A model generated the notes under the pieces. The model ran no database searches and was not told the origin of the DNA. It saw only the letters and a program-made list of their open reading frames with translations. This document shows, one piece after another, positions 49,401 through 52,400 of a stretch of 64,000 nt of DNA. Positions within the stretch are counted from its first letter, which is position 1; every line of letters begins with the position of its first letter. The position numbers and the translations under genes were made by a program. The stretch comes from Chara braunii (taxonomy: Eukaryota; Plantae; Charophyceae), in the NCBI GenBank assembly GCA_003427395.1, contig BFEA01000011.1, positions 4,980,328 to 5,044,327 of the forward strand, read 5' to 3'.

Positions 49401-52400
49401 CCACACGAATAAATCCTGCAAAAACGAATTCTGAAGTTTGTTCGCTGGGCACTTCCCCCGTTGCCCCTGGAACCCTCTAGATAACTTGCTGGAAACACAC
49501 TAACCACACAAGCGGTATCAAGCATCAACTTTATGTGCATGCAAGAACAGGTCTAAGGTTCAAGACTCCACAGGTGCATTCATAGCTCACACTACAGTAC
49601 ATCAACAGGTAAGTACACAGGTAAGTCAATGTCAAGGTTGCAGGTTCGAACTCCAGCAACAGCACTCACACATACAACACAGAACAGCAGCCAACAACAA
49701 CAGGTCCGGGATGGAATCGTGGCAGGCAAGGAAGGTGAAATCCTTTCAAAGGCAGTAAAAACATACGGCAACCCTGAACATCATCTTGGCTAGGATCCTC
49801 ATCTTGTTCCACAAAGGGTCACTAACTTTGCTTCTTAGTTTCAGAACTTTCAGTCCAGCTTGTGTCAGTCTACAGTTAGATACTATCAAGAAGCACGAGA
49901 AGAAGAAGAAGACGAGGACGGAAGGACGGAGGTGGAGAAGAAAAAGGAGGAAGAGGAAGAAGAGGAGGGGGAGGAGGAGGAGGGGGGGGGGTCACAGAGC
50001 CACATGGAAGGGGTTGACATTGCCCATCAGGGTTGCAAACCTGCCGACTGCCGAATGTGACCGCCGACCGTCTTGCAGCCAACCAGTAGGGCTGACCGGT
50101 CGGTGGTCTGCTGACCAGTCTGAAAACACTGCCATGCACTGATTTTTTTCAAACCTGAGTTGGGGGCCGTACTGCGCTCACTGAGTACAGCCCAAATCCG
50201 CTGAGAAACTGTTGGGGATGGGGGGGGTATGGGGGTTTTGGGGGGGAAGGTATAGGGCGGTATAGGGGTGGTATATGGGGTATGAGGCTTTTGGGGAGGC
50301 GGTTTGGGGGTGTTGGGGGGGGGTATGGGGGTATTGGGGGCGGGTGTGGAGCTGTTGGTGGGGTGATTGCGGGTTCCTTTTTTTTGTGTGTGGACCATCT
50401 CTCAATTTATGTCATCCTTGCGCAGGGGCCATGCTGATCTTCTCTGTATCGCTCCAATATTAACAGACGTCCCGAAGGACAGTTCTTGGGGGTTCTGGAA
50501 TCTGGACCCAAAAAAAATAAAAAAGTAATATATAATATTTGTAGTTATATTATATAACATATATGTGCCTCTAGTGCCAGCGGCGTGTCTGGAGTGTATT
50601 TTTTGGCTGTGATAGACCTTTCTTTGTTTCGTGGATGTTTTGCTGGCTTGTGATGGGGTGTGAACCGACAGTCTGTAGAGTTTTCCATCTGGTGTGGGTG
50701 AGTGATAGTCTACTTTGATTTTGGTTAAGGTAGATTATCATTTACAGTGTAATCAGTGNNNNNNNNNNNNNNNNNNNNNNNNNNNNNNNNNNNNNNNNNN
50801 NNNNNNNNNNNNNNNNNNNNNNNNNNNNNNNNNNNNNNNNNNNNNNNNNNNNNNNNNNNNNNNNNNNNNNNNNNNNNNNNNNNNNNNNNNNNNNNNNNNN
50901 NNNNNNNNNNNNNNNNNNNNNNNNNNNNNNNNNNNNNNNNNNNNNNNNNNNNNNNNNNNNNNNNNNNNNNNNNNNNNNNNNNNNNNNNNNNNNNNNNNNN
51001 NNNNNNNNNNNNNNNNNNNNNNNNNNNNNNNNNNNNNNNNNNNNNNNNNNNNNNNNNNNNNNNNNNNNNNNNNNNNNNNNNNNNNNNNNNNNNNNNNNNN
51101 NNNNNNNNNNNNNNNNNNNNNNNNNNNNNNNNNNNNNNNNNNNNNNNNNNNNNNNNNNNNNNNNNNNNNNNNNNNNNNNNNNNNNNNNNNNNNNNNNNNN
51201 NNNNNNNNNNNNNNNNNNNNNNNNNNNNNNNNNNNNNNNNNNNNNNNNNNNNNNNNNNNNNNNNNNNNNNNNNNNNNNNNNNNNNNNNNNNNNNNNNNNN
51301 NNNNNNNNNNNNNNNNNNNNNNNNNNNNNNNNNNNNNNNNNNNNNNNNNNNNNNNNNNNNNNNNNNNNNNNNNNNNNNNNNNNNNNNNNNNNNNNNNNNN
51401 NNNNNNNNNNNNNNNNNNNNNNNNNNNNNNNNNNNNNNNNNNNNNNNNNNNNNNNNNNNNNNNNNNNNNNNNNNNNNNNNNNNNNNNNNNNNNNNNNNNN
51501 NNNNNNNNNNNNNNNNNNNNNNNNNNNNNNNNNNNNNNNNNNNNNNCTGTTGAGGGTTCAGCCTCCTGATGAGTCGGTGAAACTCCGACGAAACAGTTTG
51601 TCACAGCCCCTCGTTTGTTGTCCTCTTCTCCCTCTCTGCCTACGGTTTACCGGGCAGTTCTATTTGACGATATATAACCTATTTCTTCGTGGGGTGCTGA
51701 CGACCCCCGACCTGTAGGTGCCGACCAGAGTACTAGTCAAGGGGTGCTGACCGTTGGGGTATGCAACACTGTTGCCCATATAAGGCCTTCTGAACCATTG
51801 TGCTGCAACTGTTGATGCTGTTGTTTTCCGTGACTTTCCAGTTTTGGGAATCACTTTTAGCAGACCTCGTATCGCGGGACATGCAACTCCCATGTGGTCT
51901 CTGTTCCTTTTTTTTGCCTTTTTTTTTAAAGCCCAGGGTGTTGTAGAGGCCAAGACCAGACACACGGTTGATTGCTGGCAGCGGGCAGCCAATGGTTGTC
52001 CTGACAGGGTCCCTGTTCCTAAGCTATTGACTGAAAACGTTTGACGCTGCTGAAAATTGTGCAACTGCTGCAGGCAAAGAAGTCACCCGCTGTTACATAC
52101 GAAGTGTATTACACGCCTACAACAGATGTGAGTGTTGCCCAAGTGAAGGAGCTGATGGATCTTGAGAGGAGAATCACAAGGCTTGAGAAGTCTGTGGGGG
52201 GTCAGTTCTCTCAGGTGAGTTCTTGTGTTGTGATGTCCCAGTCCTGAATACCATGGGGTGCCATGTGCTTTTGATCTTGACCTGAAACAAGCTAGAACAG
52301 ATAAGGATGCACAAAAGGAAAAGAAGGATGAAAGGAATAGCTGAGGGAAGCTTCATCAGTTCTTTTAGACTCTGCGAGTCTGCATGATATACTAGGCTCC

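Follow-up and report, generated by a model that had tools for sequence, protein, structure and literature searches.

A type III hammerhead motif in a dynamitin intron of Chara braunii and the short retroelement that probably carries it

The dynamitin gene and its intronic hammerhead

The DNA analysed here is a 64,000-nt stretch of the Chara braunii contig BFEA01000011.1 (GenBank assembly GCA_003427395.1, positions 4,980,328 to 5,044,327, forward strand), referred to below as the window. It holds a dynamitin (DCTN2-like) gene, one intron of which contains a type III hammerhead ribozyme motif directly beside an assembly gap; the motif, and the dispersed repeat to which it appears to belong, are the subject of this report. 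The host gene is identified by the peptide of the exon at 52074-52244, which matches the Pfam Dynamitin domain and has one public protein match, GBG60491.1 (CBR_g5665, Chara braunii), at 94% identity. In the GBG60491.1 gene model, dynamitin (residues 14-397) is fused to the pol of a long terminal repeat (LTR) retrotransposon. One exon served as a search query, and alignment of the public protein placed the rest, as separate exons not joined into a spliced model (window positions equal L072 positions plus 13282).

~31317-31400, 33965-34069, 40129-40299 and 42635-42928, plus strand: dynamitin exons, from GBG60491.1 aligned to the window
~52074-52216, 56706-56921 and 58720-59001, plus strand: dynamitin exons, continued, from the same alignment
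42929-52073, plus strand: dynamitin intron holding the element, 9.1 kb, with GT donor and AG acceptor
51547-51599, plus strand: predicted type III hammerhead ribozyme (sequence reading, Rfam match, own descriptor, fold energy)

According to a direct reading, every required position of the hammerhead core (CUGAUGA ... GAAA) is present, the core criteria being CUGANGA ... GAAA, an A15.1-U16.1 pair and any cut-site base but G. Stem I is GAGG/CCUC (4 bp) with loop 1 GUUCAG; stem II is GUCGG/CCGAC (5 bp) with loop 2 UGAAACU and a G-C closing pair, followed by GAAA; and stem III is CUGU/ACAG, with 4 bp visible beside the gap. Helices I and II are loop-capped and helix III is open, which is the type III topology. 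The cut site has the triplet GUU followed by G and is predicted between 51551 and 51552, 522 nt upstream of the next dynamitin exon, while the ribozyme itself ends 478 nt upstream of the exon start at 52074. An earlier note on this DNA, made from the sequence alone, had claimed a canonical hammerhead at 51547-51596, of type III, in sense within an intron about 480 nt before an exon of a DCTN2-like gene, and adjoining a run of N. All of this agrees with what was found: the core, the stems of 4, 5 and at least 4 bp, the GUU triplet and both loops were re-read, helix III is open and Rfam Hammerhead_3 gives a match, the exons lie on the plus strand on either side of a GT..AG intron, and the gap (50759-51546) ends where the hammerhead begins.

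As for the Hammerhead_3 (RF00008) search that the earlier note had suggested, it does return a plus-strand match (38.5 bits, E 8.1e-07 over 554 nt, flagged as 5'-cut by the N run), but one that falls below the Rfam gathering score of 48.5 bits. For this reason the hammerhead is not listed in the whole-window Rfam scan at gathering thresholds, which reports no hammerhead and only U6, U2 and U6atac. The low score is explained in part by the gap, which removes the 5' end of the motif. A complete homologue at another Chara locus (L079, described below) also remains under 48.5, with 41.2 bits, and the lineage as a whole therefore scores low on the Rfam model. The bare hammerhead fold has an energy of −13.3 kcal/mol versus a minimum free energy of −15.3 kcal/mol for the same 54 nt, a difference commonly seen in hammerheads when little of stem III is visible.

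The Chara sample consists of 333 kb obtained through contig look-ups of Chara proteins together with the 64-kb window, 397 kb in total. In the first 321 kb of this DNA our strict-core type III descriptor has the window site as its sole match, and L079 and L080 (76 kb) were scanned solely with a looser pattern of core plus stem II. On sequence grounds the motif is taken to be genuine and intact-looking, and it is predicted to be self-cleaving. A kissing interaction between UUCA of loop 1 and UGAA of loop 2 was considered and dropped; it is not pressed because the L079 homologue has UGCAACU as its loop 2 and does not keep the pairing.

Several side observations concern the gene itself. The chimeric GBG60491.1 model, whose retrotransposon part is a protease and reverse transcriptase, concerns the window from 23283 onward, and many other Chara gene models (MFS transporter, MCM9, GCV_T, kinase, and Raptor) are host-gene/retrotransposon chimeras as well. 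An internally deleted U2 small nuclear RNA (snRNA) match at 30985-31085 (minus strand, 50 bits, ~96/99 central model positions absent) precedes the first mapped dynamitin exon by ~230 nt. Just past the exon that follows the hammerhead, 52491-52601 forms a 49-nt intronic inverted repeat (84% complementary, 13-nt spacer), and similar sequence recurs at ~54400-54580 and 56200-56390 as fragments of open reading frames; this is probably a repeat resembling miniature inverted-repeat transposable elements.

The element, its copies and the assembly gap

The sequence on both sides of the gap aligns with a full-length copy of the same repeat at another sampled locus, L075:31355-31800, whose ribozyme is decayed and undetected by Rfam. 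The parts of the element and the other copies in the window are as follows.

50527-50568, no strand: degenerate (TA)n-like TA-rich stretch directly before the element 5' end, the presumed insertion target
50569-50758, plus strand: element 5' arm, 89% identical to L075:31355-31514 (alignment and cofold)
50605-50671, plus strand: predicted anti-hammerhead strand within the 5' arm (cofold)
50689-50756, plus strand: predicted apical hairpin of ~27 pairs within the 5' arm (cofold)
50759-51546, no strand: assembly gap of 788 N inside the element
51600-51678, plus strand: element 3' tail, ending TTTGACGATATATA, common to the copies at 34634, 42006 and L075
34634-34740, plus strand: 5'-truncated copy of 90% identity, starting inside stem II, with stems II and III mutated
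41995-42102, plus strand: 5'-truncated copy of 89% identity, starting in loop 2
35581-35641, plus strand: two tiny 3'-terminal fragments (~27 and 17 nt) within a (TA)n microsatellite

Across the gap, 50569-50758 is 89% identical to the first 160 nt of the L075 copy, and 51547-51675 matches its last 148 nt. Since this copy matches both flanks, the gap interrupts one element or a small tandem array, and the left flank is the 5' arm of the hammerhead's own element. In both full-length copies the element starts with CTCTAGTGCCAG, after TA-rich DNA, and its length is ~337 nt in the window versus 446 nt in L075. If stem III is completed from L075, the missing 5' strand would lengthen the pairing to CAGACUGU/ACAGUUUG (8-9 bp), so that stem III of the window copy is probably long.

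Downstream of the gap, the segment 51571-51677 recurs at 34634-34740 (90%) and ~41995-42102 (89%). Altogether the dynamitin gene holds five pieces of the family, namely the hammerhead copy and four 5'-truncated, 3'-coterminal fragments. All five lie on the plus strand and end in ...TTTGAC(N)ATATATA, with a different start point in each; differing 5' starts combined with a common 3' end are the pattern left by target-primed reverse transcription. All are also sense to dynamitin, which is not significant for 4-5 events. Outside the window, L073, L074, L076-L078, and L080 are the sampled Chara loci without a family copy.

These copies bear directly on the suspicion that the motif arose by chance or is an assembly artefact at a contig end. 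In favour of this one may cite the score under the Rfam gathering value, the start of the motif exactly at the gap edge, and the fact that the type III descriptor matches 14/300 block-shuffled windows (4.7%). The local E-value of 8e-07 and the contiguity of the motif with unique intron sequence downstream, however, both speak against it. Moreover, sequence from the 5' half of the motif is found again in L075 and L079, and sequence from its 3' half in four further copies, so the bases beside the gap are family sequence rather than random assembly noise, and stem III covaries between independent copies (see below). The suspicion is thus largely refuted and its remaining probability is negligible.

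Wherever several copies cover a position, the window copy carries the majority base. It therefore equals the family majority sequence, and its intact state requires no host selection at the locus. The hammerhead is best described, as far as the sequence allows, as one copy of a dispersed retroelement and not as a gene-specific ribozyme. The earlier note is in this respect partly supported: it had the motif, the intron, the sense orientation and the gene right, and missed both the repeat membership and the complementary 5' arm.

A second element family in Chara carries the same ribozyme module on a different backbone (L079:28390-28445, minus strand; 91% over 57 nt, 41.2 bits). Between the window/L075 and L079 lineages, loop 1 (GUUCAG), the core and stem II are unchanged, whereas stem III changes from CUGU/ACAG in the window to UUGU/ACAA in L079, a compensatory replacement of C-G by U-A; in addition, one G.U pair of stem III in window/L075 is G-C in L079, and the cut triplet is GUC in L079 versus GUU in the window. 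The unchanged core, stem II and loop 1, together with the compensatory stem III change, are evidence for selection on the ribozyme within the elements. In L079:27400-29600 (minus strand) the hammerhead element has (GT)n/(CA)n microsatellites on either side, and the region upstream is rich in (TTGC).

The module of stem II and loop 2, GUC(C/G/U)G-UGAAACU-C(G/C/A)GAC, also recurs exactly in 71 viral/metagenome contigs (3 + 68; L001-L071). These matches are mostly hammerheads of type I topology with conserved flanks, in families starting GGATCCC..., and a few phage contigs have type III. As relatives of the Chara motif these prokaryotic/viral hammerheads were rejected, with only the generic stem II module in common and no flanks.

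Concerning the architecture of the element, the segment with the ribozyme is not directly repeated in it, the 5' arm being complementary and no second copy, and the descriptor scan of the 5' arm and of the minus strand finds no further ribozyme. No tRNA-Met primer-binding site is found in the element even at 3 mismatches, and no polypurine tract (0 purine runs of at least 9). The flanks are TA-rich microsatellite, which is why no 4-bp target duplication is discernible. No protein domain was recognised, the left arm of 190 nt having a 56-codon open frame and no domain scan having been run; at ~340-450 nt the element is far too short for a reverse transcriptase plus GIY-YIG, and therefore only a non-autonomous derivative is possible. 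According to these data, a short retroelement of Chara braunii (~340-450 nt, non-coding and of non-LTR type) has probably inserted in sense at a TA-rich site of the dynamitin intron, where it is present singly or as a small tandem array.

Most likely, then, the gap at 50759-51546 interrupts a single repeat or a tandem array. With a single monomer only ~15 nt would be missing, while the stated gap size fits ~2 more monomers (50569-51678 spans 1110 nt, and the monomer is ~337 nt). The second case could correspond to an active tandem array, in which the gap hides monomers and host transcription yields multimers whose hammerhead-cut units are circularised. The 5' part to the left and the 3' part to the right of the gap form a classic collapsed-repeat signature, and the 1110-nt span is close to three ~337-nt monomers plus spacers. 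A rod together with a type III hammerhead is typical of viroid-like and retrozyme RNAs (PMC4918200), and Penelope-like elements and their non-autonomous relatives are often arranged head-to-tail (PMC8557442). Gap sizes in the assembly are estimates, however, a strong hairpin with an inverted repeat could by itself break short-read assembly, and 0 tandem copies of the family are seen in the 397 kb. An active array is hence considered unlikely, though it deserves some weight.

Further side observations concern small-RNA matches and a minisatellite. U6 snRNA matches are located at 50384-50480 (minus strand) and L075:13901-14001 (plus strand), with 76 and 89.5 bits, respectively. Both end in A-rich tails (ACACACA followed by A8, and AATAAAAGAAAAAAAG...) and not in a T-run terminator, and they look like retropseudogenes rather than genes. 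Beside the U6 retrocopy of the window, 10 copies of a GGGGTATGGGG-like unit in a 25-nt register make up a G-rich minisatellite at 50211-50361. Finally, a U6atac match at 34760-34888 (plus strand, 41.4 bits) starts 20 nt past the TA end of the 34634-34740 copy and has TATATAA at −26 to −20; the match is either another retrocopy or a small-RNA gene whose TA box was hit by the element.

The predicted rod and its bearing on dynamitin

In viroid-like RNAs the hammerhead is sequestered within a rod-like fold. To fold the window copy, the two real gap flanks were cofolded, unjoined. In this cofold 50605-50671 pairs with the whole ribozyme domain at 51547-51608, forming 55 pairs, 10 of them G.U. The energy gain for the real flanks is −37.4 kcal/mol on the plus strand, versus −10.6 ± 4.3 kcal/mol for 100 shuffles of the left arm (best −23.8) and −8.4 kcal/mol for the same flanks on the minus strand, and the L075 copy folds likewise (z −2.5). 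The modelled rod thus appears to be specific to the plus-strand RNA. The 5' arm is transcribed before the ribozyme and therefore should compete with ribozyme folding, so the rod should hold the ribozyme inactive, and the ribozyme would act only transiently or in RNAs lacking the 5' arm, much as in viroid-like RNAs.

For the element a life cycle can be proposed. It may be copied by target-primed reverse transcription with the enzymes of a Penelope-like (Chlamys-type) element. The ribozyme would serve the element itself: multimers or read-through transcripts would be cut down to unit-length RNA, which might then circularise, and once the RNA is mature the rod would silence the ribozyme. The copy would be a passenger in the host gene; some cutting of the pre-mRNA may occur, probably limited by the competing rod.

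A number of results weigh against this reading of a retroelement with a rod-silenced ribozyme. Between the two full-length copies, 7/11 differing rod pairs keep pairing, which is not significant, and with two full-length copies in 397 kb both the element ends and the rod rest on few sequences. None of the sampled copies starts at the cut site, and for this reason a role of the ribozyme in the element cycle is not evident from the copies. The all-sense orientation of the pieces is unexpected for a harmful sense ribozyme (again not significant), and no reverse transcriptase or autonomous partner is found in the 397 kb sampled.

A different function would be that of a host-regulatory intronic ribozyme, which cuts the nascent dynamitin pre-mRNA and lowers or tunes the mRNA, as proposed for the CPEB3 intronic ribozyme. 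The intact core, the sense orientation, the distance of ~0.5 kb from the 3' splice site and the probably long stem III are all compatible with such a role. According to PMC10919898, intronic ribozymes can alter output if cleavage is fast relative to splicing, and Xenopus retrozymes are depleted from introns, suggesting a cost of genic insertion (bioRxiv 10.64898/2026.07.22.740005). The hammerhead, however, sits in a transposon copy and is intact just as the majority sequence of the family is, and the gain from the anti-hammerhead arm (−37 kcal/mol) far exceeds the hammerhead fold (−13.3 kcal/mol). GUU is not an optimal hammerhead cleavage triplet, and the sister copy in L079 has GUC. Ribozyme-in-intron experiments also indicate that transcripts cut within an intron can still be spliced when cleavage is slow. 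With an antisense arm of its own upstream of the ribozyme, there is no ground for assuming that the host gene is strongly affected. Host regulation is therefore judged very improbable, and a large effect on dynamitin, as far as the sequence indicates, is unlikely; the cutting of nascent dynamitin pre-mRNA with an effect on splicing or output, which the earlier note had put forward, is purely conjectural.

A further scenario puts an intact head-to-tail array into the gap, fed by dynamitin transcription; its type III hammerheads would release unit-length intron RNAs that circularise, and dynamitin mRNA would be tuned or would bear a cost that can be measured. This is a doubtful scenario with little probability. 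If true, the fed array would make a streptophyte alga the home of a living circular RNA system of viroid or retrozyme kind, and it would connect Penelope-like elements with viroids and with the type III retrozymes of plants. Under the preferred reading of a dispersed non-LTR retroelement, the window locus adds a transposon copy with a well-preserved type III hammerhead, along with evidence for a rod, and not a new system.

Comparison with known systems

The closest published elements come from the same genome. Three types of Chlamys-type Penelope-like elements are described in Chara braunii, Chlamys-2_cBra and PLE-X types among them (Craig et al. 2021, PMC8557442); Chlamys-2_cBra has a canonical 3' hammerhead, and another Chara type also bears hammerheads (PMC8557442). 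Our literature search for Chara braunii and hammerhead found nothing beyond this paper. Chlamys and Naiad elements prefer microsatellites, (CA)n and (C)n in the case of Chlamys and (TA)n in the case of Naiads, and in Chlamydomonas the Chlamys elements are described as having non-autonomous relatives with common 3' ends (PMC8557442). By comparison with the published description, the window element shares with the Chara Chlamys-clade elements the genome, a hammerhead near the 3' end, 5' truncation and a microsatellite bias; its 5'-truncated, 3'-coterminal copies with such a bias are what is expected of Penelope-like (Chlamys) elements or their derivatives. In contrast to the Chlamys-clade elements, however, it is ~340-450 nt long with no recognisable reverse transcriptase, GIY-YIG or gag-like frame, and in place of the published (CA)n/(C)n bias the window family sits in (TA)n, whereas the second family lies between (CA)n runs.

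The animal non-LTR retrozymes are short, structured and tandem, with type I hammerheads (Cervera and de la Pena 2020, PMC7229834), and a preprint by Li et al. 2026 derives them from Penelope-like elements (bioRxiv 10.64898/2026.07.22.740005). The Chara element resembles them in its unit of a few hundred nucleotides, one hammerhead per unit and a very stable monomer fold, as well as in having no LTR, primer-binding site or polypurine tract and in its proposed Penelope-like mobilisation. It also has the stably folded unit of 150-450 bp that characterises them, apparently non-coding as in their case. Metazoan retrozymes, however, are of type I, animal and typically tandem, while the Chara element is of type III, belongs to a streptophyte alga and is seen as dispersed 5'-truncated copies.

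In plant LTR retrozymes the hammerheads lie inside direct LTRs on either side of a non-coding core, and a tRNA-Met primer-binding site, a polypurine tract and a 4-bp target duplication are required as well (Cervera et al. 2016, PMC4918200). The Chara element is similar to them in its type III hammerhead, non-coding and non-autonomous nature, green-lineage host and structured RNA, but it has neither direct LTRs of 300-400 bp nor a second ribozyme in a direct repeat. An identity as an LTR retrozyme was rejected for the absence of an LTR, a primer-binding site and a polypurine tract. With hammerhead viroids and viroid-like satellite RNAs it shares a type III hammerhead in a predicted sequestering rod-like fold. 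Unlike viroids, it is a DNA-encoded genomic repeat with retroelement-type ends, and no hammerhead of opposite polarity was found. The vertebrate HH9/HH10 hammerheads and the hepatitis delta virus-like (HDV-like) CPEB3 ribozyme are likewise sense intronic motifs of self-cleaving type upstream of an exon; these vertebrate ribozymes, however, are single-copy and conserved at orthologous positions, whereas the Chara hammerhead is a repeat copy.

Green-lineage type III hammerheads are known from LTR retrozymes and viroids, and hammerheads linked to Penelope-like elements are known mainly as animal type I motifs. A short, rod-folding, type III, microsatellite-targeting non-LTR element of a charophyte stands between these groups, and this intermediate position bears on the origin of plant retrozymes and hammerhead viroids. 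Judged by its sequence, the Chara element appears to join the plant-type ribozyme topology with the animal-type non-LTR design.

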